IMG/VR virus record: IMGVR_UViG_3300042402_002641
Location: 186,001-250,000 of that record
DNA: 64,000 bases
Reading direction: 5' to 3' (one strand)
Position numbers and translations under genes: made by a program. Each line of letters opens with the position of its first letter. Positions within the stretch are counted from its first letter, which is position 1. Shown piece by piece: positions 1 through 38,551 of the stretch. The notes below the pieces were generated by a model. It was given only the letters and a program-made list of their open reading frames with translations, was not told where the DNA came from and searched no databases.

Positions 1-1803
1 CATGAGATCCTGTACAGCTTCAAATAATCCACCGAATGCTATTTCTAATCCTGCTACCACACTGTTCACAATACCGAATAAGAAATTAAATGCTTCATCA
101 ACAACGTCAATTACACCTTTGAAATCTTCAAATTTCATGCTGACGCCTTCTAGGGCCTTGCCAATTCTTTCTACCACAGGCCCAAAAATCAGTTGCAGTC
201 CTAGACTGATCTTTTCAAACAGAGCAGATACCACTGCCAGCACTGGTGGAAATACTTTCTGGAAAATATCTACGATAGGACGTATGCCTGCATCTAGAGC
301 TTTTAATGCTGGTACAAGCACTGCATTAGCAATATCTGCTACCAGGCCAACAGCACTGATTAATAGATCTAAAAACCCGCTGTTGGCCAATATGCCTGTA
401 AAAGTATTACTAAGACCAGATAACACTTCTTTCATTTTGTTCATTTTTTCATTGAACTTGTCTGTATTGGCCGCGGCTTTTTTTTGTTCTTCTGTGCCTT
501 CTTTGAGTGCGTTGGCATTTATCTGTTGAGTAGCCGAAAGTTTGTTTACGGTTCCAGCAAGGTCTGCACTAGCAGCGCCTGCGCTCTTTATGCTCTGTAA
601 TTGTTTTCCGCCTTCTGACTTCATGAGATTGTTTAATGCGTTACGTTCTTCTAAGGTCACTGCCTCACCACGCTGCATTTTTTGATTCATTCTCTGTAGC
701 ATGGCCGCACTCTGAGGCATCATGGCCATGAGCTTTTGATTTTCTTCTGTGGTTGCTGTACCAGTGGCCATGATGTCTTTGGCAAAATCTTGTAGACCAT
801 CCGGAAGTCCGGTTGTGACTGCAAGAAAACTTTTTCTCACGCCATCACCTAACCCAGACATTGACGCTTGGAACTGCGCATCTTTGGCCATCGCAGCCAT
901 TTGATTTTCTACTTCTTGGCGACTTTTACCTGTGGCTTTGGCCAGCAGATCTAATTCTTTCATATAGCTTCTAGCACCTTGTGCTAGTTCTGCATTAGAT
1001 TTTTTGCCCTGCAGTCCCTGCAGTTTCATTAGATTACCATAACTGGCCAATCCTTGATTTATTTCTGCTGTGCTAAATCCCAATGCGTATAAGTCGCTGC
1101 TAGTAGATCTCAACTGTTTAGAAACCTTGGCAAAGTTAGCAGCACCGCCTTCTGTGGTAGTTCCAAACGCTCCCATAGCTTGACCATTTTTTGCAATCAA
1201 CGAACCAAATTCTTGTAGATTCATTCCGGCAGTAGTAGCTGCTGCTGAAAACTGACTGATACTACCCCCAAAACTAGATCCAGCGGCTGTAGCAGCACCA
1301 TAGGCAGCTAACATTCTGTCAGCGGCTCCTGCTACCATGGTGAATATTTTTCCTATCACAGGAAGACCGCTGAATATACTAGCAGCGTCTGAAGCATCGT
1401 CTCCCATGCGAGCTAGTGCGTCAGCAGCAGATAATCCTTTTTCAGCAAGGTCTATACCTTGTTTTACAACACCAAATAATGCGCCTGTGGCTAATCCAGC
1501 TCCGCTGGCTATTTTTCCAAGACCTCCGGCTACTACACCTGCAGCTTTACCGACTCCAAATAGTGCTGATCCTGCTGCAGAACCAGCTTTTCCGAATATG
1601 CCACCACCTCCTGCACCACCACCTCCTGCACCACCACCTCCTGCACCACCACCTCCTGCGCCACCACCACCTCCTGCGCCACCACCACCTCCACCGCGGC
1701 CACCTTTCATTACGGCCAGCAGTTCTCGAAGCGTGGATTCAGAAGCGGCATTTTTGGCTTCTACTTGTCCAATTCCTGGAATGTCGATCATTACTGCGGC
1801 CAT
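1..1803 (-). CDS. Tape-measure-like protein, N-terminal 601 codons (continues past left edge)
   Basis: Not in the ORF track because it has no stop in the window. Minus frame from ATG at 1803 reads MAAVMIDIPGIGQVEAKNAASESTLRELL, then a Gly-rich linker, then Ala/Gly-rich helical sequence (ALGFSTAEINQGL, YMKELDLLAKATGKSRQEV). Adjacent to hub chaperone genes, with a TAAATA motif upstream. Confidence 0.75.
   Translation of the reverse strand, partial: MAAVMIDIPGIGQVEAKNAASESTLRELLAVMKGGRGGGGGGAGGGGGAGGGGAGGGGAGGGGAGGGGIFGKAGSAAGSALFGVGKAAGVVAGGLGKIASGAGLATGALFGVVKQGIDLAEKGLSAADALARMGDDASDAASIFSGLPVIGKIFTMVAGAADRMLAAYGAATAAGSSFGGSISQFSAAATTAGMNLQEFGSLIAKNGQAMGAFGTTTEGGAANFAKVSKQLRSTSSDLYALGFSTAEINQGLASYGNLMKLQGLQGKKSNAELAQGARSYMKELDLLAKATGKSRQEVENQMAAMAKDAQFQASMSGLGDGVRKSFLAVTTGLPDGLQDFAKDIMATGTATTEENQKLMAMMPQSAAMLQRMNQKMQRGEAVTLEERNALNNLMKSEGGKQLQSIKSAGAASADLAGTVNKLSATQQINANALKEGTEEQKKAAANTDKFNEKMNKMKEVLSGLSNTFTGILANSGFLDLLISAVGLVADIANAVLVPALKALDAGIRPIVDIFQKVFPPVLAVVSALFEKISLGLQLIFGPVVERIGKALEGVSMKFEDFKGVIDVVDEAFNFLFGIVNSVVAGLEIAFGGLFEAVQDLM
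1601..1696. repeat. In-frame tandem repeat (4 x 15 bp CCACCACCTCCTGCR plus 2 x 18 bp variants) encoding a poly-Gly/Ala linker
   Basis: Read directly from the sequence; encodes (AGGGG)n on the minus strand. Confidence 0.95.
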
Positions 1804-1832
1804 GGCTTATTTTTTTCCTGGTAAAATACGCA

Positions 1833-1840
1833 TATAAATA
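1833..1840 (+). promoter_or_regulatory. T4-type late promoter TATAAATA for the gp26-like gene
   Basis: Exact T4 gp55 consensus 33 nt upstream of ATG 1873; GGAG RBS at 1864-1867. Confidence 0.75.
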
Positions 1841-1861: not shown

Positions 1862-1872
1862 CCGGAGATAAA

Positions 1873-2742
1873 ATGAACGAAATTCCTAACACGATGCAGC
1901 AAAAAAAGAATCCCCTGGCTGGGTTTTTTAGACAGCCTAAGATCTATGTGTCTTTGCCATCAAAAGGTAAATTCTATTCCCAAGGCGCACTAGATCGCAG
2001 TGAAAACGGACAATATGCTGTATACGCTATGACTGCCAAAGACGAACTCATGTTTAAAACTCCCGATGCACTGCTGTCAGGACAAAGCACTGTGGAATTG
2101 ATCAAGAGCTGTATACCTGCAATACTTGATCCTTGGAAAATGCCCAGTATCGACATTGACTTTGCTTTGATTGCCATACGCATAGCTACTTATGGTAACA
2201 AGATGGAAGTCAACACACAATGTCCGCATTGTAATGCTGATAATAACTATGACGTAGATCTATCTGCATGGTTCAGCGTATTTGATAATTTTGAATATAA
2301 AGAACAAATCCATGCAGATCCTCTTCTTATACATGTGCGTCCTTATTCCTATAGTGAAATAACCAAGACCAGTATTAAAACCCTTGAGCAGCAGAGAATA
2401 TTCGCCATAGTCAATGATGAGACTATGGGGGACGAAGAAAAATTAGAAAGATTTGGAAAAAGTTTTGTAAAGTTAACTGAACTAACTGTGGATTTGATTG
2501 CAGAATGTATCAGCCAAATAGATACTCCAGACGGACCAGTTACAGACAAACAAATGATAAATGAATTTATTCACAACTGTAACAAAGATCTATTTGAAAC
2601 AATTTCAAAACATGTTGTGTCAATGAAAGACGAAATTGAATTGAAATCTCATATTGTGTCGTGTAGTGAATGTACCAAAGAATTTACCATGCCAATAACC
2701 ATGGATCAGGCAAATTTTTTCGCCGTAAAATCTCAAAATTAA
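1873..2742 (+). CDS. gp26: Baseplate hub assembly protein / tail chaperone, T4 gp26-like
   Basis: LPSKG..Y, MTAKDEL, D.D..LIAIRIATYG, CPHC and CSEC zinc pairs and near-terminal NFF, as in gp26-family proteins. Confidence 0.7.
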   Translation: MNEIPNTMQQKKNPLAGFFRQPKIYVSLPSKGKFYSQGALDRSENGQYAVYAMTAKDELMFKTPDALLSGQSTVELIKSCIPAILDPWKMPSIDIDFALIAIRIATYGNKMEVNTQCPHCNADNNYDVDLSAWFSVFDNFEYKEQIHADPLLIHVRPYSYSEITKTSIKTLEQQRIFAIVNDETMGDEEKLERFGKSFVKLTELTVDLIAECISQIDTPDGPVTDKQMINEFIHNCNKDLFETISKHVVSMKDEIELKSHIVSCSECTKEFTMPITMDQANFFAVKSQN

Positions 2743-2793
2743 CCTTGCCGGAGATTTTACGGGAATCTGATAACTTAGACAAAGAGGCAAGGT
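2712..2793 (+). promoter_or_regulatory. Programmed -1 ribosomal frameshift signal: A_AAT_TTT (overlapping T_TTT_TTC) plus H-type pseudoknot
   Basis: Heptamer 2712-2718 correctly phased in the gp26-like frame. Stem 1 CCGTAAAATCTC 2723-2734 / GAGATTTTACGG 2751-2762 (12/12). Stem 2 ACCTTGCC 2742-2749 / GGCAAGGT 2786-2793 (8/8). The -1 frame is open to 2948. Confidence 0.8.
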
Positions 2794-2948
2794 CGATAAA
2801 AAAAGACTGTCTAAAACTCTGTTGGTACATGCGAGGACTATCCTACAATGAAGTCGTCAACATGAGTTGGGACGAACGTGAGATAATTGGAGAGATTGTT
2901 GCAGAAAATCTCGAAACAACTAAAAAATCAGGACTGCCTTTCTTTTAG
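2718..2948 (+). CDS. gp51-like hub assembly module, probably expressed as a -1 frameshift extension of the gp26-like protein
   Basis: LCWYMRG.SY.E..NMS..ERE resembles short gp51-like chaperone segments. The track start at 2670 lacks an RBS and lies inside the upstream gene. Confidence 0.6.
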   Translation, partial: FRRKISKLTLPEILRESDNLDKEARSIKKDCLKLCWYMRGLSYNEVVNMSWDEREIIGEIVAENLETTKKSGLPFF

Positions 2949-3190
2949 AGTTTGTTATACATCTTTTTAATCAATGACATTTGTCTATTGTCTAAAGGTT
3001 GACCGTTAATAATACTCGCCAATATCTTTTTTGTATCTCTAGGATCTAATATAGAAAACACAGATTGTGTTGTATCAACAGACGGTGCAGAAGTTGCAGA
3101 GGTTGATACCGTACTAGGGCCAGGAGCAGTTTTAGCATATCCTTTTTTAAAACTGTCTACAAAACCGTCGTTTAAATCTCGAATTCTCAT
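2945..3190 (-). CDS. Small putative internal virion protein (MRIRDL N-terminus)
   Basis: 81 aa, ATGA-coupled to the upstream gene; shares N-terminal and KKGY motifs with neighbours. Confidence 0.55.
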   Translation of the reverse strand: MRIRDLNDGFVDSFKKGYAKTAPGPSTVSTSATSAPSVDTTQSVFSILDPRDTKKILASIINGQPLDNRQMSLIKKMYNKL

Positions 3191-4221
3191 TTTACAAATA
3201 CACTAGCGGTTCCCTTGGCCAGTGCTGATTCGAACATTCTGCGCTTGTGTATTTCCAGCTTCTGTGCAAATATTTCATTGAGGCTTTTTCCACGATGTAC
3301 TAGACTCTTTGTTTCTGCGGCTGCTTTGATTGCTAGTTTGTCTGACGCTGTTCGTTGGAATCCTGGTTTTGCTAGTGCTGCATCTGCGGCGGCTTTAACG
3401 GCCGGGTCTTTTGCGGGTTTAGACAACTGTTGAGCCACATTAGCAAATGCTCCTTGTCCTGCTGGTGCAGTCGCTGTGGCATCCGCTGCTGGTTCCGCCG
3501 CTGGGGGTTTTGCTGCTGCTAGATTAGGATTACTAGGATCAGCGGTGTTTGTTGCACTGACAGGTGCATTAGCCATAGTATTCGCTGGTGCTGCGGCTGC
3601 TGGCGCTGCTCCTGGCTTAGGTGCCCCTGCCGGTGCTGCTAATGATTTTGTCAACAGTTGCAAAATTCTCTGCTTGCCTTTCTTATCTAACTTATCTACG
3701 TTGGCCTTAACCTGAGCGTAAACAGTTTCTCCGGCTTTGGTTGAAGTTTGCTTATCTACTGCTGCTGTAGTTTTAGCTAACGCTGCGCCTGCTGCGCCTG
3801 TTTGTGGCTTAGCTGGTGCTGTGCCTGCAGGTCCTTGCGCATTGATATCTTGGGTTGAAGGAGCTGCTCCGCCTCCTGCTGCTGGTGCTGCTGCTGCTCC
3901 GCCTCCTGCTGCTGGTGCTGCTGCTGCTCCGCCTCCTGCTGCTGGTGCTGCTGCTGCTCCGCCTCCTGCTGCTGGTGCTTCTGCCGGTGGAGTATACCCA
4001 GGTTTTCCTGCATTAGGATCTGGATCATCTCCTACTACAGCTTTTCCAGACTGATAACCTTTCTTCAATGCTGTGCCAGCACCAACTACTCCGCCAGCTA
4101 CCGCGCCTATGCCTTTGGCAACACCGCCTACAGCTTTGCCTATACCACGGCCCAAGGCTCCTAGAGGGCCTTCGTCTATCTGTTCAAGCTGTGATTCAGT
4201 TAAGATTTCGTTAATTCTCAT
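3187..4221 (-). CDS. Ala/Pro/Gly-rich putative internal virion protein (MRINEILTES N-terminus)
   Basis: 344 aa; [IL]-x-E motifs near the N-terminus, glycine-zipper segment, low-complexity linkers. Confidence 0.6.
   Translation of the reverse strand: MRINEILTESQLEQIDEGPLGALGRGIGKAVGGVAKGIGAVAGGVVGAGTALKKGYQSGKAVVGDDPDPNAGKPGYTPPAEAPAAGGGAAAAPAAGGGAAAAPAAGGGAAAAPAAGGGAAPSTQDINAQGPAGTAPAKPQTGAAGAALAKTTAAVDKQTSTKAGETVYAQVKANVDKLDKKGKQRILQLLTKSLAAPAGAPKPGAAPAAAAPANTMANAPVSATNTADPSNPNLAAAKPPAAEPAADATATAPAGQGAFANVAQQLSKPAKDPAVKAAADAALAKPGFQRTASDKLAIKAAAETKSLVHRGKSLNEIFAQKLEIHKRRMFESALAKGTASVFVK
3863..3979. repeat. In-frame 30-bp tandem repeat x ~4 encoding AAAPAAGGGA
   Basis: Unit GCTGCTCCGCCTCCTGCTGCTGGTGCTGCT read directly. 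Confidence 0.95.
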
Positions 4222-6187: not shown

Positions 6188-6622
6188 TTATTTTGCCTGA
6201 GATTGTTCTAAAAGACGCTGTCTAAGTATATTTGAACCGCCTACTCTGACGTTTATAATGCCATTATAATAGTCGTCGGATTCTAAAACCCTGCGTTCAA
6301 ACTGCTCTCGAGCTTCTAAGTATGATAGTTCTGCCTTGGATTTGCAAAGGTAAAGTATTTCTCTTGTGAAGTTTTCCGGACCTAATGCTTGGACGTCTGC
6401 GTTTAACCTGTCTGATGAACCATAGTATTCGCGCCAATCGCTTTCTACTACTGATCTTCTTTTAAGTTTTTTGCCTTTGAGTGGGGGTTTAGTACGTTTG
6501 AATTGTGCTAATTTCTTGCCTATGTACTTCTGTCCGGTGGTTTTATTCGTGATTATATAAACAAAGCCAATATAGCCTTCTGGTATTTCGTTTAATATTT
6601 GATTTTGATACGTCCATTGCAC
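6188..6622 (-). CDS. Stand-alone GIY-YIG endonuclease domain protein (Seg-like)
   Basis: GFVY-x9-YIG motif, YYGSS, conserved Glu (YLEA) and YYN; 144 aa with no appended DNA-binding domain. Confidence 0.8.
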   Translation of the reverse strand: MQWTYQNQILNEIPEGYIGFVYIITNKTTGQKYIGKKLAQFKRTKPPLKGKKLKRRSVVESDWREYYGSSDRLNADVQALGPENFTREILYLCKSKAELSYLEAREQFERRVLESDDYYNGIINVRVGGSNILRQRLLEQSQAK

Positions 6623-6853
6623 TCATTTAGTTAGTTTCGGAGGTCTGCCTAGTTGGCCTTTTCTGGATTTTTTACGTTCTAGTCTTTTTGCCTGTATTTC
6701 CATGCGTCTTGTTGATGCATGGTTACGTATTTCTGATAGCCAATATCGTGCCTTAATGCCTGCTTCGTCTGAATTCTTGTATTCAAACCGATCCTGCCAT
6801 TTAAAATATTCTTGGAAAGCAGCGATCATTAGATCGTGGCTGTCTGTGCTCAC
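6623..6853 (-). CDS. Small basic helical protein, possibly Hc1-like nucleic-acid binding
   Basis: AGIKARYWLSEI...RRMEIQ pattern and Lys/Arg-rich tail; coupled to gp46. Confidence 0.4.
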   Translation of the reverse strand: MSTDSHDLMIAAFQEYFKWQDRFEYKNSDEAGIKARYWLSEIRNHASTRRMEIQAKRLERKKSRKGQLGRPPKLTK

Positions 6854-8628
6854 TCTATGATCTCCACATCGTTGGAATAACTTGTGAATCCATTTTCTTT
6901 GATCACCTTCAGCACATGATTCACACGGCTGGTTAGATCATCTCTATGTGAAATTAGAAATACATTCTTGTCACGCTCGCGGGTCATGCGTTTCAACACA
7001 GCAATACTGGATTCTACTCCGCTGGCATCCATGCCTGAATCCACTAATTCGTCGATGAACAAGAGATTGATGCTGTGATAGAGATTCTCCCATACATCAC
7101 GGAAAGCCCATGACAACGATAGAATCAATCTATTGCGTTCACCGCGGCTCAAATTGTCAAAATCTAGATCCTGTCCCAGTTGGGTGATGATCACTGTGAG
7201 ATCATTTTGGAATTCCACTGTGTGCGGCAGGCCAATCTTGTCCAGATAATAGGTAAGGCGTTGATTAAGGAATGCGAGATTCTGATCAATGATGCGTTTG
7301 CGCACAAAACTATCTTTGTTTGTGAGTAATTTGTACAGAAACTCCTGATGGTCTTTGACACGCATCAGTTCATTCATGTAGTTCCAATCGATCTCCTGCA
7401 CCGCAGTGGCCTTGAGCTCGATGATCTGTTCATCATAGGGATTTTCATCTGCAGCCTTGATCTCGAGATCTTTTTCTAAACTGGTCAGTGTGTTCTTGTG
7501 ATTCAATGCTTCTTCCAAGGTATCGTACTGCACCGTTGGACAATCGCCTAGAGCTCCTAATTCTGTGAGTGCTGATTCATAGGCCGAGATGTTTGCAGTC
7601 TGCGAATCATATTCTGCACAGGCAGCCTCATGATCCTTGCGTTTTGCATCCATGACTTCGTCGTGCTTGGCATCATGAAATTCTTGACCACAGGCATGAC
7701 ACAGATGTCGTTCCAAGGTAGCGATTTCTGCTGCTAGTCGATCACGAAGTTTTTCTTCTCTGCTTTGATCTAGCCTAGCACGATTTAATTGAGCAGTGAC
7801 TTCATTAATGTCTTTGCGCAGTTGATTATAAACAGCCAGAGCCTTGTGTGCAGCCACTTCTTGTTCGATATCTATATGACTCAGATGATCGATACTCTTG
7901 AGAATATTTTCAAGATTTTTTTCTTTGGCTTCATCCCACATGTTCTGCTTGCGCTCTAGAGCAGTGATGCTCTGCTGTATACGCTCGTTGCTGGCTTTGA
8001 CAGTTTCTACTCGAGTGTTCTCTGTGCTGATACTGTCTTTGGTTAGCTTGATCTGCTCTTTGAGAGCTTCTGCTTTTTCACTCAGCAGCGTAATACCCAA
8101 CAACTGTTCGATGATAGCACGTTGTTCTGCAGCCTTCTGCGCCAAGAATGGTTCTGTGTAGGTGTTTAATGCCACAAGGTGCTTGAACATGTCGTGGCTC
8201 ATACAGAATCGTTCTTCGATGCTTTTCTGTGTTTCTCTGCTGTCGCCTTGCGATTCGTCTAGATCTGTGAGCTGCTGTTCTTCGCCATTGACACTGAATT
8301 TCAGTATGTTGGGTTTACGACCACGCTCGATATGGTATTCAACACCGTCTACGTCAAAGGTCACTGTGACCAGCATGCCCTTGCCGTTGATCTTGTTGAT
8401 TAAATTATCACGTTTGATATTGGTCAAGGCCTGTCCGTAGATGCCGTAACTGAGACCATTGATGATAGTGGTCTTGCCTGTGCCGTTTCTAGCACCCGAG
8501 TCGTCACCGCCTAGGTCTAAGTTTTCACCTAAGACCAGTGTGAGCTGTCCGCGATCAAAATCGATGGCCTGGGTCTGTGCGCCCACACTCATGAAGTTAC
8601 GAACTGTGAGATTCTTAATTTTAATCAT
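6850..8628 (-). CDS. gp46: Recombination endonuclease ATPase subunit (Rad50/SbcC)
   Basis: Walker A NGTGKT, coiled coil with CHAC zinc hook, signature LSRGE, Walker B LLFIDE, ISH. Confidence 0.95.
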   Translation of the reverse strand: MIKIKNLTVRNFMSVGAQTQAIDFDRGQLTLVLGENLDLGGDDSGARNGTGKTTIINGLSYGIYGQALTNIKRDNLINKINGKGMLVTVTFDVDGVEYHIERGRKPNILKFSVNGEEQQLTDLDESQGDSRETQKSIEERFCMSHDMFKHLVALNTYTEPFLAQKAAEQRAIIEQLLGITLLSEKAEALKEQIKLTKDSISTENTRVETVKASNERIQQSITALERKQNMWDEAKEKNLENILKSIDHLSHIDIEQEVAAHKALAVYNQLRKDINEVTAQLNRARLDQSREEKLRDRLAAEIATLERHLCHACGQEFHDAKHDEVMDAKRKDHEAACAEYDSQTANISAYESALTELGALGDCPTVQYDTLEEALNHKNTLTSLEKDLEIKAADENPYDEQIIELKATAVQEIDWNYMNELMRVKDHQEFLYKLLTNKDSFVRKRIIDQNLAFLNQRLTYYLDKIGLPHTVEFQNDLTVIITQLGQDLDFDNLSRGERNRLILSLSWAFRDVWENLYHSINLLFIDELVDSGMDASGVESSIAVLKRMTRERDKNVFLISHRDDLTSRVNHVLKVIKENGFTSYSNDVEIIE

Positions 8629-9641: not shown

Positions 9642-9670
9642 ATTATACCGCCTTTATGATGAAAGATCAA
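9642..9670 (-). promoter_or_regulatory. Sigma70-type promoter TTGATC-N17-TATAAT, probably giving a leaderless gp47 mRNA
   Basis: -35 at 9670-9665, -10 at 9647-9642, only 6 nt to the ATG at 9635. Confidence 0.7.
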
Positions 9671-10521
9671 TCCCAATCACTGCCTGTGTTATCCACAGTG
9701 GTAGTGACTATGGCAGGTCCGGGCACACTGCCGCCTGCGTTCTGTCTGGTCCATGAAGGGTTCATGCCGTTCATTTCTAGAATGTCGTCTCGAATGTTTT
9801 GATTGCGTTTTTCGATATTGATGATTCGCACGAATGAATTAGTAACAGCAGCGGTATAATAAGCAAAAGGATTATCGGATTTGGATTCATCGAACTGTAG
9901 TCCTATCTGAGTGAGTTGTAAGATGGCCTGCCCACGCATTTCGTCATTGTAGGTATAGCCTCGAACGTTGCCTCTAGTAGCATAGCGTTCACAGAGCTTG
10001 ATAAACATGCGAGCGAGATCGTTGGTCATCTGACCGTGATCCTTAGAGAATTCACCGTGTTCGAGATCACCTTTCCAGTGGCTCTTGCCCACACAACTGA
10101 TATTACCTTTGTCATCGAATTTCCAATGTTGGAATGGAGGAAAATTAACTTTGTCATGACTGTCCGCGGTGTTCTTCAACGTCTTTTTGCGACCCGGAGC
10201 CAACGGTATATGTTCAAAGGTCATCACACGGAATATGAGATCTTCCTTGCGCATCTTTTTGTAATCTACTTCAAATTCTTTAGCAGGTAGTTTTTTACCT
10301 CCGGCTATTACCGCTGCTTCGTGTGCCTGTTTACTGAGTCTAGCTGCACAATTTCTTTTAGCCTCTGCTATGGTTCTTATGTTGATTTTAGCTAGGTTAG
10401 GTACTATGAGATCATAGAATCCATATTCTGGTTTGAGGTAGCTGCAATAGGTATTTTTACTAAGGTGTATTTCTTTGAGTAGGTCTTTGTTGGTCAAGTA
10501 CTTGATCTTGGGCACTGTCAT
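9667..10521 (-). CDS. gp55: Late transcription sigma factor, T4 gp55-like
   Basis: YLTNKDLL N-terminus, GYTYNDEM, QFDESKSDNPFAYYT; next to gp47/gp46 as in T4-like phages. Confidence 0.85.
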   Translation of the reverse strand: MTVPKIKYLTNKDLLKEIHLSKNTYCSYLKPEYGFYDLIVPNLAKINIRTIAEAKRNCAARLSKQAHEAAVIAGGKKLPAKEFEVDYKKMRKEDLIFRVMTFEHIPLAPGRKKTLKNTADSHDKVNFPPFQHWKFDDKGNISCVGKSHWKGDLEHGEFSKDHGQMTNDLARMFIKLCERYATRGNVRGYTYNDEMRGQAILQLTQIGLQFDESKSDNPFAYYTAAVTNSFVRIINIEKRNQNIRDDILEMNGMNPSWTRQNAGGSVPGPAIVTTTVDNTGSDWD

Positions 10522-16662: not shown

Positions 16663-16670
16663 TATAAATA
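16663..16670 (+). promoter_or_regulatory. Late promoter TATAAATA
   Basis: Exact consensus 19 nt upstream of ATG 16689. Confidence 0.75.
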
Positions 16671-16688: not shown

Positions 16689-19600
16689 ATGACCACTACA
16701 AGTAGACAAAATAATCTAATTCTAAACCAAGACTGGACTAGAATCTATCAGACATTTAGAAACGCTGATTTCAAAAGCTATGACTTCGAAAATCTGCGCA
16801 GGGTTATAATCACTTATCTGCGAGAAAATTATCCAGAAGATTTCAACGACTATATTGAGTCATCTGAATATCTAGCACTAATTGATGCCGTGGCATTTTT
16901 AGGCCAGAGTCTAGCATTTCGTATTGATCTAGCCAGCAGAGAGAATTTTATCGAACTAGCTGAGACCAAAGAAAGCGTGTTGCGAATTGCTCGAATGCTT
17001 AGTTATAACGCCAAGAGAAACGTTGCTGCTAAAGGACTGTTAAAATTTACTTCGGTGACTACTACAGAAGATATTGTAGACAGTAACGGACGTAATCTCG
17101 CACAACAGATAGTCAGCTGGAATGATCCAACAAACACCAATTGGCTTGAGCAATTTATTTTAGTTTTAAATTCAGCAATGGCCGACAACACAGAATTTGG
17201 TCGCAGCCAAGGTTCAGCGACCATACAAGGTATACCTACAGAACAATATAGATTTAGAACTACCAGCACAGATGTGCCAATCTATTCTTTCAGCAAGACT
17301 GTAGCTGCTAGAGGCATGCTGTTTGAATTAGTTTCCACCGCATTTAAGAACAGTGAAAATATCTATGAAGAACCTCCTGTGCCTGGCAATCAATTAGGAT
17401 TTGTATATAGAAATGATGGCACAGGACCTGCTAGTCCCAACACCGGATTTTTCCTGATGTTCAAACAGGGCACACTAGCCCTAGCTGATTTTGGTATAGG
17501 GGTGCCAACTCCTAACGAAAAAATCGCCATCGATACGGCCGACATCAACAACGACGATGTATGGCTGTTTTCATTAAACAGTGCAGGAGCACAATTAGAA
17601 GAGTGGACTAAAGTTAGTACGCTGGTAGGTAACAATATTGCCTATAATAGCGTAGAACAAAACATTAGAAACATATATGCAGTTAATACTAAAGAAAATG
17701 ATACCGTTGATCTAGTTTTTGCTGACGGAGTATATGGTAATCTACCACAAGGTTCTTTCAGAGTATTTTATAGAACTAGTAACGGATTATCCTACACCAT
17801 CAGTCCCAATGAACTTAGAGGCATCAATATTAGTATTAGTTATTTTAATAAATCAGGAGTAGAGCATACCTTAACAGTAGGACTAGCTCTTCAATCTACA
17901 GTAGCGAACTCAGCTGCAACTGAAAGTATAGATTCGGTGAGAACCAATGCTCCAGCAGTTTATTATACGCAGAATCGAATGATCACTGCCGAAGACTATA
18001 ATCTTGCACCGTTAAGTAGCAGCCAAAATATAGTCAAGATTAAATCCATTAACAGAACATCCAGCGGTATTAGTAGAAATTTTGATATCATTGATGCATC
18101 TGGGAAATATTCAAGTATCAATGTGTTTTGTGATGATGGATATATCTATAAACAAGAAAGTGAAGAAACTCTTGGATTTAGATTTAACAATAGAGTCGAT
18201 GTAATTAATTTTCTTCGGCAAAGCGTAGAACCAAAATTCACAGACGCAGATGTTTATAATTTTTATTTTACAAAATTTGATCGTATTCTTTTCACAGATA
18301 ATAACACGGTATGGCAAAGCGTTACTTCTACAACCCCTACCGGCTATTTCAAGAATGTTGTGGATAATTCACTGTTAAAAGTAGGTACGTATTCTACTTC
18401 TAGTTTGAAATACCTGCTCAGCGGAGCATTAATTAAATTTACGGCACCCGCCGGACTAGCATTTAAAAAAGGTAAATTAGTAGCTATCAATTCTCAAGAT
18501 CCAGAGCAACGCGATAGGCTTTGGACTAAAGTAGTGTCTGTGGCAGGCGACGGTACTAATGCTGGTAGAGGTGTGCTGACCAACGGACTAGGGGCGGTAA
18601 CATTTAGTGACGCTGTGCCTACAGGTGCAGTGGCAAATCGCATTGTGCCTAGATTTATTAATGATTTAGATGCTGCGTTAGAAACAGAAATAGTTAATCA
18701 ATGCTCTCAGAATTTAAATTTTGGATTGAGATATGAATCGGTTTCGTCGACCTGGAAGATTGTTACCGCTACTAATATTAACCTAACCAGCGATTTTAGT
18801 CTAGGAAAATCGGGAGACGTAACTAACACAAATGCAGATAGTTCATGGTTAGTAGCTTTTGTTAAAGAAGCCGATAGATATGTAGTTAGACTAAGACGAC
18901 TCAGTTATGTGTTTGGCAGCGTTATGCAGAATCGTTTTTATTTTGATACCAACGAAAAACGTTATAATGACCAATTAGGTGCTGTGGTAAAAGATCAGGT
19001 CAAGGTACTTGGGATCAATACCGACAGCGGGTTTATCACAGAATTACGGCAAGACGTGCCCTTTGAAATTAGCGACACTATTAAATTTGATGATGGATAT
19101 GAAAGTACCACGGAAATAAAATTAAGTTTTCAAGATAGCGACGACGACGGAGTCATAGATAATCCAGATTCATTTGAACAGATAGTTGGCGCAGACACAG
19201 CGTTAAATTATTTGTTTTTTAAGGAAACTGTAGATCAATACGGCACAACTGATTATCAGTTAGTAGATAACTCGGATAATCTAATATTAATTCGAGAAAA
19301 AGAATCTGTAGTTGATTTCACTGATGCAACAACTTATCCCAACGGACAATTGATCTATTTTTATACCATTGACGAAGATGTTGTTAAAGCAGTGAATCGA
19401 AGCACTAATACATTTGATCTTGATAGATCATACAGAGCTAACATTGGTCGAAGAAATCTTAAATTTCAGTATATTCATAATGCCAGCGTGGATCGCAGAA
19501 TAGATCCAAGCTCTAGCAATATCATTGACGTGTTTTTATTAACCAGATCCTATGATGAATCATATAGGATTTATCTTGCAGGCGGCACTGCAACTGCACC

Positions 19601-20096
19601 AGAACCTCCCAGCACAGACAGTTTAAGAACAACGTTTGGAGCCAACCTATCTGCGATTAAATCTATCAGTGACGAAATCATTTATCATACAGTAAAATAT
19701 AAGGTGTTGTTTGGTTCAAAAGCAGATCCTAAACTACAGGCCATATTTAAAGTGGTTAAAAATCCTGGACAATCTATTAATGATAACGATCTTAAAGTTC
19801 GAGTTATCTCAGCAATAAACTCATTCTTCGACATTAGCAATTGGGATTTCGGTGATAGATTTTATATGGGTGAACTTACTACCTACATACTAAATTCTAC
19901 AGCACCTGATATCAGTAACATAGTTATATGTCCAAAACAAAGTGGTCAATCATTCGGAAGCCTGTTTGAGATACAGAGCAGATCGGATGAAATTTTAATC
20001 AGTGGAGCCACGGTCACAGATGTTGAGATAGTCACAGCTATCACAGCAGCTGAAGTTGGTTCTGCTATAACCAGTGTGGTATCTACTACCTATTAA
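16689..20096 (+). CDS. gp6: Baseplate wedge subunit, gp6-like (extended, 1135 aa)
   Basis: YDFE.L, FNDY..SS, ENF...A, ARMLSY, FADG.YG..P, ESIDS.R.NAP..Y.TQNRMITAEDY. Confidence 0.85.
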   Translation: MTTTSRQNNLILNQDWTRIYQTFRNADFKSYDFENLRRVIITYLRENYPEDFNDYIESSEYLALIDAVAFLGQSLAFRIDLASRENFIELAETKESVLRIARMLSYNAKRNVAAKGLLKFTSVTTTEDIVDSNGRNLAQQIVSWNDPTNTNWLEQFILVLNSAMADNTEFGRSQGSATIQGIPTEQYRFRTTSTDVPIYSFSKTVAARGMLFELVSTAFKNSENIYEEPPVPGNQLGFVYRNDGTGPASPNTGFFLMFKQGTLALADFGIGVPTPNEKIAIDTADINNDDVWLFSLNSAGAQLEEWTKVSTLVGNNIAYNSVEQNIRNIYAVNTKENDTVDLVFADGVYGNLPQGSFRVFYRTSNGLSYTISPNELRGINISISYFNKSGVEHTLTVGLALQSTVANSAATESIDSVRTNAPAVYYTQNRMITAEDYNLAPLSSSQNIVKIKSINRTSSGISRNFDIIDASGKYSSINVFCDDGYIYKQESEETLGFRFNNRVDVINFLRQSVEPKFTDADVYNFYFTKFDRILFTDNNTVWQSVTSTTPTGYFKNVVDNSLLKVGTYSTSSLKYLLSGALIKFTAPAGLAFKKGKLVAINSQDPEQRDRLWTKVVSVAGDGTNAGRGVLTNGLGAVTFSDAVPTGAVANRIVPRFINDLDAALETEIVNQCSQNLNFGLRYESVSSTWKIVTATNINLTSDFSLGKSGDVTNTNADSSWLVAFVKEADRYVVRLRRLSYVFGSVMQNRFYFDTNEKRYNDQLGAVVKDQVKVLGINTDSGFITELRQDVPFEISDTIKFDDGYESTTEIKLSFQDSDDDGVIDNPDSFEQIVGADTALNYLFFKETVDQYGTTDYQLVDNSDNLILIREKESVVDFTDATTYPNGQLIYFYTIDEDVVKAVNRSTNTFDLDRSYRANIGRRNLKFQYIHNASVDRRIDPSSSNIIDVFLLTRSYDESYRIYLAGGTATAPEPPSTDSLRTTFGANLSAIKSISDEIIYHTVKYKVLFGSKADPKLQAIFKVVKNPGQSINDNDLKVRVISAINSFFDISNWDFGDRFYMGELTTYILNSTAPDISNIVICPKQSGQSFGSLFEIQSRSDEILISGATVTDVEIVTAITAAEVGSAITSVVSTTY

Positions 20097-20097
20097 T

Positions 20098-23000
20098 ATG
20101 TCAGATAAATTTTTTCCTTTCAGTAAACTACCTATAAGAAAATCAGTAGAACTTCTACCTAAAGTTTTTCAGACAGAAGCTAACGATAAATTTCTTGCAG
20201 GCGTAGTAGATCCTTTAGTTCAACCAGGATTATTGGATAAAATTACAGGATATGTCGGTCGAAGGTTTGGCAAAACTTATAATGGTAACGATCTATATCT
20301 AGATACAGATGCTACATTAAGAAGTGCTTATCAGTTAGAACCTGGAGTGATATATCGAAATCAGGATAAGATTGAAAATTTCTATGATTACATTGATTTT
20401 AAAAATCAATTAAAATTCTTTGGTAATACAGATGAACGTGACGACAAACTTACTAGCCAGGAGCACTATGCCTGGAATCCGCCTATTGCCTGGGACAAGT
20501 TCATCAATTATCGCGAATATTATTGGGTTCCCGGCGGGCCGCCTAGTGTCTCAATATATGGACAAAGCGCCACAGTCAACAGTACATATAAAGTAGTATT
20601 GAGTACAACTGCAAACAGTTTTGTGTTTACTCCAGATGCCTATACCAATAATCCTACTCTAACATTATATCGAGGACAGACATATAAATTTAGAGTTAAT
20701 GCTCCTGGTGAAGGATTTAGTATTCGTACGAATTATGACACAGGAAGTTTGATATTTAAACCTAATTATCCATATCTTGCAGGCAATCTAGCAGTGTATG
20801 ATACTAAACTATATAGAGCACGCCGAGACATAAATCCCGCAGACGGCAGTTCCATCACATTAGATAGTGAAGATTGGGAATATCTCGAACCAGCTGCATC
20901 CGGCGCAGCCTTAGAATATAAAAAAGGTGTAATTAACAACGGTACTGAAAATGGCACAGTGACCTTCACAGTGCCCTACGATGCTCCTGATACATTATAT
21001 TATCAAGGTCTAATTAATCCTGATGCTTTTGGTAGATTTGTTATAGCTGATATTGAATCTAATACATATCTCAATGTAGATAAAGACATTGTTGGCAAGA
21101 GTGAATATACTAGTAGTACTGGTATTACACTAAGCAATGGAATGGTTGTTGAATTTCAAGGTACCGTTATTCCAGAAAAATATAGTCAGGAAACATGGGT
21201 GGTCGAAGGAGTTGGAAAAGCTATAACATTGACAAAATTCTCTGATCTTATAGTTCCAGTGTTAACGGCCACAGTACCTGAAGTATTATTTGATAACGCA
21301 GGTTTTGACACAGAACCTTTTGACGATGCTACCGCATATCCTACCTTTAAAGATTACATCACTATAGCTAAAGACAGTATTGATTCTAATCCTTGGTCAA
21401 GATATAATCGTTGGTTCCATAGAAGTGTATTAGAAACAGCTTATACTCTGCGAGGCGAAGATTTTCCTGCAGAAGAATCTACTAGAGCTAAACGACCTAT
21501 TATAGAATTTTCAGCTAATCTGCAGTTATTCAATCACGGATCAGCAGCTAAACAAACTGTAGACTATCTCGATGATTATACCACTGATGTATTATCTCGC
21601 ATTGAAGGCAGCACAGGTTACAACGTCGATGGAGAGTTTTTATTTGAAGGTGCTAGGATATTGGTTATTGCTGATACCGATAGATTAACCAACAACAAAA
21701 TATATGAAGTAAAATTCATTCGACACATAAACACTACTCAGATACATCTAGTAGAAACAGAAGATAGTGACAGTATATTAGGCCAAGGGGTGTTGGTGCG
21801 TCGAGGTTCCAAAAACGGTGGAAAGATGTTTCACTTCAACGGAACTAATTGGATACCAAGTCAAGCAAAAACTTCAGTAAATCAGGCTCCACGGTTTGAC
21901 GTATTTGATTCGACAGGTGTAAGTTTTAGCGATATCGAAAAATACACCACTAGTACATTTACAGGCACAAAAATTATAAGCTATAAGCTAGGGTCAGGAA
22001 GAATAGATACTGAATTAGGTTTTAGTTTAAGTTATTTGAACATTGACAATGTTGGTGATATAGAATTTAATTTCGACTGGGATTCGGATATTGCAGAATA
22101 CACAGAAACACGAACACCTAAAAGCGTTAAAATATCTACCGGATACTATAAATTTAATCCCGATGCAGTTTATGCTAATAATTGGTTACTGGCTGGTTCA
22201 GAATTTATGCAACCTATAGTAGATAGTCAATTAGTAATCAGTGATACAAATACGTTGACCTTTGATACGATAGACTGGTCTGCGTTGAAGACAGACCCAA
22301 TAATCAACATTTACATAAACGGCACAAAGTATGCAGGAACGTACACTAGGACGGAGAACACATTTGAGTTTCCCCTCACTCTGTCTGCCAAAGACGCTGT
22401 AGTTCTAAAAGTTATTACAGATCTTGATCCCGATCAAGGTTATTATGAAATACCAGCAGGTCTAGAAAAGAATCCATTTAATACAGAACTGACATCTTTC
22501 ACATTGGGCCAGGCTGTAGACCATATTGTTTCGGCTGTAGAATTTGATTCTAAGGTTACAGGTAATATACCGGGAGTTAGTAATCTAAGAGACAGCGATG
22601 GATATCAAAAACATGCCAAACGTTTTCTGAAGCATTCTGGTATAGCACCACTGGCTATTATGACGCTGTGTGATAAAACACATAATATTATCAAATCAAT
22701 ACAATATGCTAAAAAAGCCTACACAGATTTTAAAAATAATTTTGCTGCTAGGGCAGTAGAAATTGACTATAATGATAGTGTACCAGATTTTGTTGATGAT
22801 GTTATTAACAGTCTAGCAAAAAATAAAACTGCGGTGAGTCCGTTCGCAGACAGCGATATGCTAGGATCAGGTGCTTATACCGTTGTAACATATACTGTAG
22901 AAGATGTAGGAATAAAAACATTTTCATTAGGCGAAAAATTTGATCTAACCAGTCTCAGCAAACGTGCTGTTTATGTATATCTAAACGGCAGTCAACTTTT

Positions 23001-36667: not shown

Positions 36668-36680
36668 TTAGAGAACAAGA

Positions 36681-38531
36681 ATGGCATACCAAATAAACAA
36701 AACTGACGGAACTATTATAGCCACAGTGGCTGATGGGCAGATAGATACCCTATCCACAGACATCACACTGATAGGTAAAAATTACAGTGGGTTTGGAGAA
36801 GCATTTAATGAAAATCTAGTAAAAATGCTAGAAAATTTTGCCAGCACCACAGCACCTCTACATCCATTAAAAGGCCAGGTTTGGTTTGATAATGCAGAAA
36901 ATAAGTTAAAAGTTTATAATGGCTCAACATTTATTCCTGTGAGTTCCGCCACCATTTCTAGCACACAACCCGATACCTTATCTATAGGTGATTTATGGTT
37001 TGATGATGTAGGAGCTCAGTTGTATTTCTTCGACGGGAATCAACCTATATTAATCGGACCAGCATATTCAACAGCACAAGGTAAAAGCGGATTAGAGGTC
37101 GACAGCATATTAGATACTCTGAATCAAACCAAAGTAATAACATATCTTTATAACAATGGTATATTACTAGGAATTTTTTCTAAAGACAGTTTCACACCTA
37201 AAATTTCTATTATTGGATTTAGCGGTAGCATAGAGCCTGGATTTAACGCAGGTACATTGGCTAATATAAAGTTTCGAGTAACCTGTACTAATTCAGAACA
37301 ATTAGGAGGTGCAGTAGCTACCACATATGCTAGAAGAGATTCAGCTAACACGTTGAACGGACAATTAAGTATAAACGTAGATGCAGGTCTAGTGATAGGC
37401 TCGGGTAATCAGATGAATCTCTTGGTAAGCTCGGGAGATATAGAAGTATCCAATTTTGCCAGCGACAAAGATCTATTTCTTAAAGTTAGAAAAGGTATTG
37501 ATCAAGAAACTGCGGTATCTATAGATTCAAGCACACGAACAGTTGGAATATATTCAGGATTTCCAACCAGTATGGTTAATATCGGGGGCAGTTTAATAGT
37601 AGCAGGTGACCTTACTGTTGAAGGAACCACTACTACTATTAATACCGCTAATGTAACTATCGAAGACAAAACACTGACATTGGCCAACGTAGCAGCGCCA
37701 ACGGAAACCACTGCTACTGGTGCTGGTATAATAATTAGATCTACTGGTTCAGATTCATCTGCCTACGATAAAGAAATAGTTTATAGATCTACCAGCGAAG
37801 GACCTCCGCCTACCGGAGTATTTGACGTTAGTGAAGATCTAAATCTAGCAGCAGGCAAACAGTTACAGATAGGCGGGGTTAAAGTCATTGACGGTAACAG
37901 TCTTGGAAGTTCAATTACCAGTATTCCGGGAGTTACAGCTTTTGGTACACAGAATGTTCTAAACATTGGTCCTGGAGTACCGCCAGTAACACAGATGCGT
38001 TTAGAAAACCATAGGATCAGCACAGTGTCAACTAATTTTGACATCGAACTTGAACCAGACGGCTCGGGAAATGTTGCGTTAATAGGCTTGCCGAGAATCA
38101 CAGGAATGCAGAATCCTGTGGGTCAACAAGATGCAGCCACCAAAGAATATGTAGATAGCACAGTAGAGTCAAGATCATTGGTATTCAGCACGGATTTATC
38201 TGATGGAAAATCTAACACATATATTATTGCTAACATTTTAAATAATTTAGCTCCGGTAGCTGAATTTAGAAATGGTACTTATGCAAGAATATTGTGTACA
38301 CTAATCAATCCTTCCAGCACCAGTTTAGCTATCAATACATTGCCTCCTGGTATCGGTACTAATCCTTTCTTGACCGATCTATCAGGAAGCAGTTCTTTAG
38401 CCATTACTAGTATTTCATTCCCCACAGCTACAATTCCTGCAGCGTCTATTTCAACAACTAGAATTATTAAAACGTTTCAAATTGTAGCTAACGTTTGGAC
38501 ATGGCAGTCAGATTTGAGTTTACCACCATAA
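36681..38531 (+). CDS. Tail fibre protein 2
   Basis: Same N-terminal module; GDLTVEGTTTTIN...IEDK and DAATKEYVD fibre motifs. Confidence 0.8.
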   Translation: MAYQINKTDGTIIATVADGQIDTLSTDITLIGKNYSGFGEAFNENLVKMLENFASTTAPLHPLKGQVWFDNAENKLKVYNGSTFIPVSSATISSTQPDTLSIGDLWFDDVGAQLYFFDGNQPILIGPAYSTAQGKSGLEVDSILDTLNQTKVITYLYNNGILLGIFSKDSFTPKISIIGFSGSIEPGFNAGTLANIKFRVTCTNSEQLGGAVATTYARRDSANTLNGQLSINVDAGLVIGSGNQMNLLVSSGDIEVSNFASDKDLFLKVRKGIDQETAVSIDSSTRTVGIYSGFPTSMVNIGGSLIVAGDLTVEGTTTTINTANVTIEDKTLTLANVAAPTETTATGAGIIIRSTGSDSSAYDKEIVYRSTSEGPPPTGVFDVSEDLNLAAGKQLQIGGVKVIDGNSLGSSITSIPGVTAFGTQNVLNIGPGVPPVTQMRLENHRISTVSTNFDIELEPDGSGNVALIGLPRITGMQNPVGQQDAATKEYVDSTVESRSLVFSTDLSDGKSNTYIIANILNNLAPVAEFRNGTYARILCTLINPSSTSLAINTLPPGIGTNPFLTDLSGSSSLAITSISFPTATIPAASISTTRIIKTFQIVANVWTWQSDLSLPP

Positions 38532-38551
38532 TGAATACAGGAGCGCAATAA

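Follow-up and report, generated by a model that had tools for sequence, protein, structure and literature searches.

A conserved slippery site by which one gene of a giant T4-like phage very probably makes both a short and a long baseplate-hub assembly protein

Can one phage gene yield two hub-assembly proteins that T4 makes from two separate genes, 26 and 51? The question is raised by a gene near the start of a 64,000-nucleotide stretch (positions 186,001 to 250,000 of IMG/VR record IMGVR_UViG_3300042402_002641; hereafter the window), in which a zero-frame ORF ends just downstream of a run of T and a second ORF continues in the −1 frame. A sequence-only reading had proposed a pseudoknot-stimulated −1 frameshift fusing a gp26-like to a gp51-like protein, as a functional equivalent of the lambda G/GT system. 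The relevant elements are as follows.

1..1806, minus strand: N-terminal 602 aa of a divergently transcribed protein of more than 978 aa, a putative tape measure protein.
1833..1840, plus strand: TATAAATA, a T4-type late-promoter-like box 33 nt upstream of the ATG.
1864..1868, plus strand: GGAGA, a Shine-Dalgarno-like motif 4 nt upstream of ATG 1873.
1873..2742, plus strand: zero-frame ORF of 289 aa, the gp26-like baseplate-hub (assembly) protein, with two CxxC zinc-ribbon pairs and the C-terminus ..MDQANFFAVKSQN.
2712..2718, plus strand: A_AAT_TTT, an upstream overlapping heptamer in phase, which would give the same product.
2715..2721, plus strand: T_TTT_TTC, the conserved slippery heptamer, on which tRNA-Phe would occupy both the P and A sites.
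2721..2948, plus strand: −1-frame extension of 75 codons (RRKISKLTLPEIL...KKSGLPFF) plus TAG at 2946–2948.
2723..2762, plus strand: stem 1, 2723–2734 (CCGTAAAATCTC) pairing with 2751–2762 (GAGATTTTACGG), 12 bp with a 16-nt loop and a conserved core of 2726–2734 with 2751–2759.
2740..2742, plus strand: zero-frame stop TAA, lying inside the structure.
2742..2793, plus strand: stem 2, loop bases 2742–2749 (ACCTTGCC) pairing with 2786–2793 (GGCAAGGT), 8 bp.

Direct inspection of the sequence confirmed the observation. The frame set by ATG 1873 reads GCA AAT TTT TTC GCC GTA AAA TCT CAA AAT TAA, placing both heptamers in the X_XXY_YYZ phase. Both helices are perfectly paired and together close an H-type pseudoknot with loops of 7, 1, and 23 nt; stem 1 was also recovered by an inverted-repeat search and by minimum-free-energy folding. 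The products are 289 aa and 283 + 75 = 358 aa, with the junction ..DQANFFRRKISK.. in the longer form. Two corrections are nevertheless in order. Only the second heptamer is universally conserved, as the first is kept in this clade only and is lost in the loci L032 and L061, in RaK2, PA5oct, and Atu_ph07, and in the cyanophages. In addition, the −1 frame of the window, said to lack a convincing start, does hold an ATG at 2670, which gives the 92-aa ORF that gene callers report; it has no Shine-Dalgarno-like motif and is absent from most relatives. The late-promoter-like box has only three copies in the window, two of which lie just upstream of structural genes (1873 and 16689), and a gp55-like late sigma factor is encoded at 9667–10521; promoter function is inferred. 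An upstream Shine-Dalgarno-like stimulator of frameshifting was considered for the window and set aside, since ATGGATCA is only weakly Shine-Dalgarno-like and is fixed by the MDQ codons.

Is the arrangement more than chance? TTTTTTC by itself is common, with 35 occurrences in the window against 22 expected. In contrast, stem 1 is the only perfect hairpin-type inverted repeat of at least 12 bp with separate arms in the 64 kb, and the combination is conserved in every relative examined, although the structures of a few (loci L036, L038, and L069) are weak or displaced. Whether homologs retain the heptamer and stems, and whether the stems covary, had been posed beforehand as a test of the proposal. 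All 80 IMG/VR relatives retrieved (60–100% aa identity) keep TTTTTTCG followed by a −1 ORF of 77–78 aa ending in PFF. The three synonymous sites inside the heptamer are invariant in 62 of 62 distinct close relatives, while other third positions average 1.44 bits of entropy. The slippery FF codons also encode a conserved protein motif in both frames, such that part of their conservation comes from the protein. The heptamer is likewise present in all distant relatives examined, including RaK2, PA5oct, Atu_ph07, Munch, and Turkey5, and in 66 cyanophage-type loci.

Congruent with a change of reading frame at this point, coding constraint switches from frame 0 to frame −1 exactly at the slip site: The highest codon-position entropy sits on frame-0 third positions upstream (1.44) and on −1-frame third positions downstream (1.33), and the −1-frame peptide is conserved from the slip site onwards. 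No start codon is conserved in the −1 frame. Of 69 distinct loci, 54 have no ATG, GTG, or TTG between the preceding −1-frame stop and the slip site, and in locus L089 and phage Munch a −1-frame TAA directly abuts TTT TTT. Downstream candidate starts are not conserved either, and the position of TTG 2745, which had been named as a possible independent start, reads TTA, CTG, GTA, or TGG elsewhere.

Both helices of the proposed pseudoknot covary, although these controls do not correct for phylogeny. Across relatives, 82.7% of stem 1 cells are paired and 6 pairs change on both sides; the pair 27:54 is GC in 36, AU in 19, GU in 2, and never unpaired, and the stem's own partner pairs better than a foreign partner in 2000 of 2000 permutations. 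For stem 2, 75% of cells are paired and 5 pairs change on both sides, as exemplified by ACCTTGCC/GGCAAGGT in the window and TTCCGTAC/GTACGGAA in the relative L070; its own partner averages −13.0 and a foreign partner −9.5 kcal/mol, with 0 of 2000 permutations as good. The spacer is short, being 1 nt from T_TTT_TTC to the full stem 1 and 4 nt to its conserved core, against the usual 5–8 nt. In E. coli, stimulators start 5–8 nt downstream of the slip, and UUN A-site codons and all-pyrimidine ZZN codons are among the better shifters (PMC4066793). The pseudoknot is specific to this clade. Other clades keep the slip site but use nested stems or plain hairpins, strong structures that start 2–7 nt after the slip: Atu_ph07 (z −5.9), L089 (z −4.3), the hairpins of PA5oct and RaK2, and an 11-bp cyanophage hairpin after 5 nt. 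An Rfam search of positions 2500–3100 gave nothing relevant.

What, then, are the two products? The short one is a gp26-type protein. It matches Pfam PF12322 (T4_baseplate) over residues 51–283 (E 2.3e-16; 60.6 bits against a cut-off of 24.5) and phrog_150 over positions 7–235 of 282, the same span as T4 gp26, and ends with the same motif of FF plus a few residues, T4 gp26 ending EFFELL. It also carries an N-terminal NPLxGFFRQPK motif that T4 lacks. Its AlphaFold model has a pLDDT of 80.3 with a disordered last 10 residues. The extension alone (77 aa) returned no hit in Pfam, PHROGs, or NCBIfam, whereas a profile built from it found 441 proteins. About 21 of the top 150 are proteins of 261–351 aa (20 of them 319–351 aa) that carry the extension in frame behind PF12322, with junctions such as ..CNNFRNQIL.. 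collinear with ..ANFFRRKIS..; such natural fusions show only that the architecture is viable. In three loci, L093, L094, and L099, such a long form lies directly after a short paralogue of 287–319 aa that ends ..SDFFAK or ..SNFMS, and the synteny (a large divergent protein in all three, and a T4-type portal in the GCA_015689235.1 contig that also carries the L093 protein) matches that of the window. The extension is modelled as a helical domain in the protein P0016, and the long-form homologue gave BFVD fold matches to baseplate hub assembly proteins.

The long product thus finds its counterpart in T4 gp51, itself a gp26 paralogue whose residues 1–201 are a complete PF12322 domain followed by a 48-aa tail, while gp26 is the domain alone. 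A tail-against-tail profile comparison by hhalign aligned the extension with gp51 tails at a probability of 90.6% (E 1.3e-6, over 34 columns), a score reached by 0 of 200 column shuffles. Weaker tests failed: The extension profile against the single T4 gp51 sequence gave no tail match, and whole-protein profiles of the long forms against the gp51 family aligned only the N-terminal 100 columns, at a probability of 51%. Moreover, precomputed Pfam PF28602, which gp51 relatives carry, is not assigned to the −1 ORF products. The proposed interpretation is therefore partly supported: A conserved −1 frameshift joining a gp26-like domain to a peptide that corresponds to the gp51 tail is strongly supported by the comparative data, but it is the whole transframe product that is gp51-like, the −1 ORF corresponding to the gp51 tail only. 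Nor are T4 genes 26 and 51 a tandem pair; they are divergently transcribed paralogues. T4 has a separate gene 51 and encodes FF as TTC TTT, which is not slippery, and the gp51 tail measures 48 aa against the 75 aa of the extension.

The same arrangement recurs in cyanophages. P-SSM2 and 66 relatives have the slip site in front of the puzzling mini "gp51" of cyanophages and marine vibriophages (Sullivan et al. 2010, PMC3037559), a small −1-frame ORF directly after gp26 that is similar to the C-terminal region of T4 gp51 and preceded by in-phase T_TTT_TTC and a hairpin. This case was reached through T4 gp26 and then P-SSM2, since a search with the gp51-tail profile found only 4 fragments. Unlike the gene in the window, the mini gp51 is annotated as an independent gene of about 57 aa with a conserved ATG 4 codons after the slip, its zero-frame tail is a single codon, and the putative stimulator is a plain 11-bp hairpin with a 5-nt spacer. 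P-SSM2-type phages also have GGAGG 10 nt upstream of the slip, the spacing of the Shine-Dalgarno-like stimulator of dnaX. Bacterial −1 frameshift cassettes (dnaX; IS3-family orfA-orfB) and RNA viruses similarly combine an X_XXY_YYZ heptamer with a downstream hairpin or pseudoknot, and pseudoknot stimulators are not peculiar to RNA viruses, as the "RNA-virus-style" label of the sequence-only reading had implied; bacterial IS elements use them too. The differences from these cassettes are a heptamer of U_UUU_UUC rather than A_AAA_AAG, the spacer of only 4 nt to the conserved stem core, and a shift that extends the protein, whereas in dnaX it shortens it.

The comparison with lambda gpG/gpGT and related tail assembly chaperones (also P2 E/E+E′) remains an analogy. 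In common are two morphogenetic proteins that share an N-terminus, the longer one made by a −1 shift near the end of the short ORF, which here rests on sequence-level evidence only. The T4 homologues are assembly factors, gp51 is absent from virions, the gene neighbors a tape-measure-like gene, and one GenBank record already labels a gp26 homologue "tape measure protein assembly chaperone." In the PA5oct record, the neighboring proteins carry an MS note and the hub protein does not. However, no sequence or fold relationship was found: Pfam, PHROGs, and NCBIfam gave only baseplate hub, PDB sequence searches with both profiles gave nothing, and neither did Foldseek searches of both models against the PDB. 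Lambda uses G_GGA_AAG. The gene does not lie between a tube gene and the tape measure gene on the same strand; it is divergent from the tape-measure-like ORF, and downstream genes are on the opposite strand. That neighbor is tape-measure-like only by composition (17% Ala and 12% Gly, a poly-Gly run, Gly-zipper hydrophobic stretches, and a K/E/A-rich tail) and by synteny with a RaK2 protein whose note reads "similar to tape measure" and with a PA5oct structural protein. BLASTP against RaK2 ORF088 and T4 gp29, Pfam, PHROGs, NCBIfam, and tblastn returned no homology hit, leaving the assignment inferred only.

Taken together, the gene at 1873 is, with high confidence, best explained as the single hub-assembly chaperone gene of a T4-related jumbo phage, decoded in two ways. 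In this view, most ribosomes would read frame 0, stop at 2740, and release the 289-aa protein corresponding to gp26. A fraction would pause with tRNA-Phe on UUU (P site) and UUC (A site) of U_UUU_UUC, because the mRNA entrance meets the conserved core of stem 1, four nucleotides downstream, which stem 2 locks into the pseudoknot. Both tRNAs would re-pair one base back on UUU UUU, and translation would continue to 2948 to give the 358-aa protein, a T4_baseplate domain plus a 75-aa helical tail. The frameshift would therefore fix the ratio of a gp26-like and a gp51-like chaperone made from one late transcript, a pair that some uncultured relatives make from two tandem genes. What the analysis establishes is the sequence elements and their conservation, the frame switch of coding constraint, the covariation, the in-frame homologues, and the homology of the tail. 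That slippage really occurs and yields a transframe protein, how efficiently it does so, the stimulatory role of the pseudoknot, and the chaperone function, including any binding to the tape measure or tube, are inferred in the absence of experimental evidence such as a junction peptide or reporter assay; the function is taken from T4 genetics, in which gp26 and gp51 are listed as hub assembly chaperones and gp51 is absent from particles (PMC3004832). Searches of the literature, subscription-only papers excepted, found no report of a frameshift in gp26 or baseplate-hub genes, and the RaK2 paper does not mention it.

The principal alternative, considered unlikely, is that the −1 ORF is a separate mini gp51, translated from ATG 2670 or TTG 2745 or by termination–reinitiation at the gp26 stop, with no fusion made. 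Gene callers and annotators treat it this way, as seen in more than 1512 clusters of "hypothetical protein," the 57-aa gp51 of P-SSM2, and small ORFs in Munch, Turkey5, and Atu_ph07. Indeed, in some lineages a −1-frame ATG lies right at the stop, Atu_ph07 and Turkey5 having an ATGA stop–start overlap and cyanophages TAAGTATG, such that separate initiation could coexist there. Against this stand the absence of a conserved start in the window's clade, the onset of peptide conservation and −1-frame codon constraint upstream of every candidate downstream start, the −1-frame stops that abut the slip, the invariant synonymous sites, and the in-frame fusions with a collinear junction; the cyanophage ATG, in turn, is buried in the 5′ arm of the conserved hairpin.

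Slippage of RNA polymerase on the T6 run, by which a fraction of mRNAs would carry U7 and encode the fusion in frame, would give exactly the same protein; the T run is invariant, and one long-read contig (L098) does show T7. That contig looks error-ridden, however, with the N-terminal half of its gp26 in another frame, and was set aside as a natural fusion because homopolymer sequencing errors are the probable cause. Six T is shorter than the runs of about 9 known to give efficient slippage in bacteria (review PMC5009743), a downstream RNA structure conserved by covariation at ribosome-scale spacing has no role in such a model, and the requirement for an NNT codon before TTT TTC fits tRNA re-pairing; this possibility is very unlikely. 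Least tenable is a chance arrangement or decaying gene, with coincidental heptamer and stems and a remnant −1 ORF. Although TTTTTTC is frequent in this AT-rich genome, this view is already contradicted by conservation of the whole arrangement across phage lineages that share only 21–40% protein identity, with purifying selection on the −1 frame.

A bolder proposal is not excluded but remains tentative and less likely than not: gp26 and gp51 would be the long-missing counterpart, in T4-type myophages, of the G/GT logic, a short and a long form of one protein, needed in a fixed ratio, loading the tape measure protein into the hub. The one-gene-plus-frameshift arrangement seen here, in other jumbo phages, and in cyanophages would then be the widespread and possibly the ancestral state, and T4's two genes a derived duplication.

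Short/long pairs made by frameshifting are a hallmark of tail assembly in long-tailed phages, but T4 and its relatives were not known to use one. The present finding places a conserved and very probable −1 frameshift in a different, unrelated protein family, the gp26/gp51 hub chaperones, and gives a simple reason why T4 carries two paralogues. It explains the long-noted oddity that cyanophage and vibriophage "gp51" is only about 20% of the T4 length, and re-annotates well over a thousand clusters of small "hypothetical proteins" as C-terminal extensions. It also makes the old question of what gp51 does "catalytically" experimentally tractable, as the short:long ratio could be varied by editing one heptamer, and provides a family in which frameshift stimulators of different topology (pseudoknot, nested stems, and hairpin) have replaced one another on a fixed slip site.

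ATG 1873 opens a 289-codon ORF in which the zero frame, near its end, reads GCA AAT TTT TTC GCC, so that two overlapping heptamers both lie in the phase needed for tandem tRNA slippage. The elements of the locus are as follows:

1833-1840 (+), a TATAAATA box preceding the ORF
1864-1868 (+), a GGAGA motif preceding the ORF
1873-2742 (+), the zero-frame ORF, stopping at TAA 2740-2742
2712-2718 (+), A_AAT_TTT, the upstream heptamer
2715-2721 (+), T_TTT_TTC, the second heptamer
2723-2734 with 2751-2762 (+), stem 1, 12 perfect pairs
2742-2749 with 2786-2793 (+), stem 2, 8 perfect pairs
2946-2948 (+), TAG, the stop to which the -1 frame runs on

A shift at either heptamer gives the same 358-aa product, with the junction ..DQANFFRRKISK.. 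The sequence-only reading had described loops of 7, 1 and 23 nt, and its observation held on re-examination. The nested fold recovers stem 1, which is also the only perfect hairpin-type inverted repeat of at least 12 bp with separate arms in the 64-kb window, whereas TTTTTTC by itself is common. Only three TATAAATA boxes occur in the 64 kb, fewer than the 7.6 expected by chance, and two of them, at 1833-1840 and 16663-16670 (+), sit 26-33 nt upstream of structural gene starts, as T4 late promoters do.

The 289-aa product matches Pfam T4_baseplate (PF12322) over residues 51-283 and phrog_150 'baseplate hub' over profile positions 7-235; the profile match therefore ends exactly at the two Phe codons of the slip site. 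The window, which is identical here to a 280-kb IMG/VR contig, belongs to a T4-related jumbo phage, and encodes gp46/gp47-like nuclease subunits, a gp55-like late sigma factor, gp5- and gp6-like baseplate proteins and tail fibres. The closest cultured relatives of the hub protein are Atu_ph07, Phosso, PA5oct and the RaK2 group, at 28-37% identity. Elsewhere in the window, a single ORF of 4600 codons with a GTG start (20074-33876, +) lies between a gp6-like baseplate wedge gene (16689-20096) and tail-fibre-like genes (34556-40822), and a 144-aa ORF (6188-6622, -) that matches phrog_447 and several homing-endonuclease PHROGs lies just downstream of the gp46-like SbcC gene (6850-8628).

All 80 fetched IMG/VR relatives (60-100% protein identity) show the same arrangement: ..NNT TTT TTC G.., a short zero-frame tail of variable length (AVKSQN, GVKS, AVRS or AKG before the stop), and a -1 ORF of 77-78 codons counted from the FF and ending ..GLPFF. 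In 62 distinct sequences all three synonymous positions inside the heptamer are invariant, while frame-0 third positions upstream average 1.44 bits of entropy. Upstream of the slip the entropy maximum lies on frame-0 third positions, and downstream it lies on -1-frame third positions (1.33 bits); the frame under protein-coding selection therefore changes at the heptamer. Of 69 distinct loci, 54 have no ATG, GTG or TTG between the preceding -1-frame stop and the slip, the -1 frame usually being open for only 0-16 codons upstream. The possible downstream starts are not conserved and lack Shine-Dalgarno-like motifs, and the window's TTG 2745 is TTA, CTG, GTA or TGG elsewhere. More distant phages, namely Atu_ph07, PA5oct, RaK2, Munch, Turkey5 and the IMG/VR loci L086-L090, all carry in-phase T_TTT_TTC and a -1 ORF of 72-78 codons. 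No GenBank record examined annotates this as a frameshift, and some leave the ORF uncalled. In L089 and Munch, a -1-frame TAA directly abuts TTT TTT.

The RNA structure was tested on an ungapped alignment of 57 distinct sequences, in which 82.7% of cells are paired in stem 1, with 6 pairs changed on both sides, and 75.0% in stem 2, with 5 pairs changed on both sides. Pair 27:54 of stem 1 is GC in 36 sequences, AU in 19 and GU in 2, and is never unpaired. The given register beats all slid registers, and no shuffle reached the observed covariation score. In a second control, each sequence's arms were paired with the partner arms of other sequences, and own partners were better for both stems, at -11.4 against -8.4 kcal/mol for stem 1 and -13.0 against -9.5 kcal/mol for stem 2, with 0 of 2000 permutations as good for either. 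Because these controls do not remove phylogenetic signal, the pseudoknot is well supported rather than proven. Stem 2 is remade with quite different letters in different lineages, for example TTCCGTAC/GTACGGAA in the relative L070, and sometimes in a register shifted by one. The conserved core of stem 1 starts at 2726, four nucleotides after the heptamer, or about position +11 from the P-site codon, where the mRNA enters the ribosome; this spacing is at the short end of the usual 5-8 nt (PMC4066793). Other clades keep the slip site but use other putative stimulators: a 9-bp stem enclosing an 8-bp hairpin in Atu_ph07 (z -5.9), a 16-bp long-range stem in L089 (z -4.3), simple hairpins in PA5oct and RaK2, and an 11-bp hairpin 5 nt downstream in cyanophages.

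That the fusion is a real protein architecture is indicated by a profile search with the extension against 1.84 billion representative proteins, which found 441 hits. Most are fragments of 40-100 aa, which are -1 ORFs called on their own. However, about 21 of the top 150 are proteins of 261-351 aa (20 of them 319-351 aa) that bear the extension at their C-terminus, in frame behind a PF12322 domain, and their junctions, such as ..CNNFRNQILMMPESD.., are collinear with the predicted transframe junction. In three such contigs, the long form follows directly on a shorter T4_baseplate paralogue of 287-319 aa that ends ..SDFFAK, ..SNFMS or ..TSFFND at the stop. The synteny, with a large protein on the opposite strand in all three and a T4-type portal in the GCA_015689235.1 contig that carries the same protein as L093 (one of the three), is like that of RaK2 and PA5oct, and the window shares the divergent large neighbour. 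These lineages therefore encode a short and a long form as two genes. The N-terminal motif of the window's hub protein (GFFRQPKIYVSLP, 1924-1962) resembles the transframe junction (NFFRRKISKLTLP, 2716-2754); in lineages with two tandem genes the short paralogue keeps the N-terminal copy and the long one keeps the junction copy. This may be a repeated binding motif. In AlphaFold models, one long-form protein, P0016, is predicted with high confidence (pLDDT 88.9, pTM 0.81), its extension forming four helices, whereas the window's short form (pLDDT 80.3) ends in a disordered tail that holds the FF.

In T4, genes 26 and 51 are divergent, not tandem. gp26 (208 aa) is the PF12322 domain alone and ends ..EFFELL, while gp51 (249 aa) is a complete PF12322 domain (residues 1-201, E 4e-52) plus a 48-aa tail. 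A tail-against-tail profile comparison of the extension with 23 T4-like gp51 tails gives a probability of 90.6% and E 1.3e-6 over 34 columns. The shared pattern is ..S/Y..M.P.ER..I..L/I-I/V-E-K.. and, in some gp51s, a terminal KTGL. No score from 200 column shuffles came near it (maximum 21.2 against 34.6). T4-like gp51 proteins also carry a precomputed Pfam family, PF28602, beside PF12322; that family, which was not part of the Pfam set searched here, is not assigned to any of the -1 ORF products, although the tails are homologous by profile comparison. So the predicted transframe product as a whole is the gp51 equivalent, and the zero-frame product is the gp26 equivalent. T4 has its own gene 51 and writes the FF as TTC TTT, which cannot slip. 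The T4 literature lists both proteins as hub assembly chaperones, with gp51 absent from the particle (PMC3004832). The sequence elements, their conservation, the change of coding frame and the homology of the tail are what the analysis itself demonstrates, whereas slippage on the ribosome, a stimulatory role for the RNA structure and the chaperone function are inferred.

The same slip site is found in cyanophages. Sullivan et al. (PMC3037559) noted that the gp51 of cyanophages and marine vibriophages is only about 20% of the T4 length, lacking the first ~200 residues but resembling the C-terminal region; the paper does not mention a frameshift. In P-SSM2, gp26 ends CAG AGT TTT TTC GTA TAA, the annotated 57-aa gp51 lies 2 nt later in the -1 frame, and the -1 frame is open through the slip and reads ..AEFFRISMAHEDLESYYKINF..PWEREIYLALL.. 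Of 68 distinct IMG/VR relatives, 66 keep the heptamer, the hairpin and a GGAGG 10 nt upstream, the two exceptions being truncated loci. In these cyanophage gp26 genes (2170-2240 of the P-SSM2 locus, L100, and loci L101-L180), the GGAGG stands at the spacing of the dnaX internal Shine-Dalgarno stimulator. A conserved ATG four codons after the slip leaves separate initiation possible there, but that ATG, the annotated gp51 start, lies inside the 5′ arm of the 11-bp hairpin and would be sequestered by it. The frameshift is regarded as likely in cyanophages too, albeit less secure than in the window's clade.

A proposal of the sequence-only reading was that this pair is the functional equivalent of lambda G/GT, and its interpretation is only partly supported. 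The logic is the same: a short and a long morphogenetic protein would be made from one gene by a -1 shift near the end of the short ORF, next to a tape-measure-like gene, and one GenBank record even labels a gp26 homologue 'tape measure protein assembly chaperone'. Yet apart from the shift itself, every membership criterion that could be examined came out against it. No sequence or fold similarity to known chaperones was found, and the gene is not between the tube and tape measure genes. The divergent neighbour at 1-1806 (-), more than 978 aa long and seen at full length in locus L002, is tape-measure-like only by composition and synteny: it has a poly-Gly run, Gly-zipper hydrophobic stretches and a K/E/A-rich C-terminal part, yet no hit in Pfam, PHROGs, NCBIfam or 50,697 phage records. 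That the pair works like G/GT is a reasonable but tentative hypothesis, whereas the statement that it is a G/GT is not supported.

Among alternative explanations, separate initiation or termination-reinitiation of the -1 ORF is unlikely, as the conservation pattern argues against it in this clade. In Atu_ph07 (L081/L092, about 3831-3845) and Turkey5 (L097, about 2345-2358), however, the sequence TTTTTTCGCATGA places the zero-frame TGA over a -1-frame ATG, such that stop-start coupling could operate alongside slippage in these phages. Transcriptional slippage on T6 is more doubtful still, since the run is too short and this model would not explain the conserved RNA structure. One relative, the ENA long-read contig L098, has seven T at the slip site (about 2440), giving an in-frame fusion ..SFFRRKLL.., with a 9-bp GC-rich stem 7 nt after the run, but the N-terminal half of its gp26 is in another frame, so homopolymer sequencing errors are likely. 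Chance is all but excluded.

No paper in the literature searched, which did not extend to subscription-only articles, and no GenBank record examined describes a frameshift in gp26 or baseplate-hub genes, and the large recoding review PMC5009743 does not mention gp26, gp51 or baseplate. A programmed -1 frameshift making a short/long pair of assembly factors is in itself familiar; what differs here is that it is inferred, from comparative sequence evidence, in an unrelated protein family, and that it brings an evolutionary link to the T4 gp26/gp51 paralogues and to the mini gp51 of marine phages.
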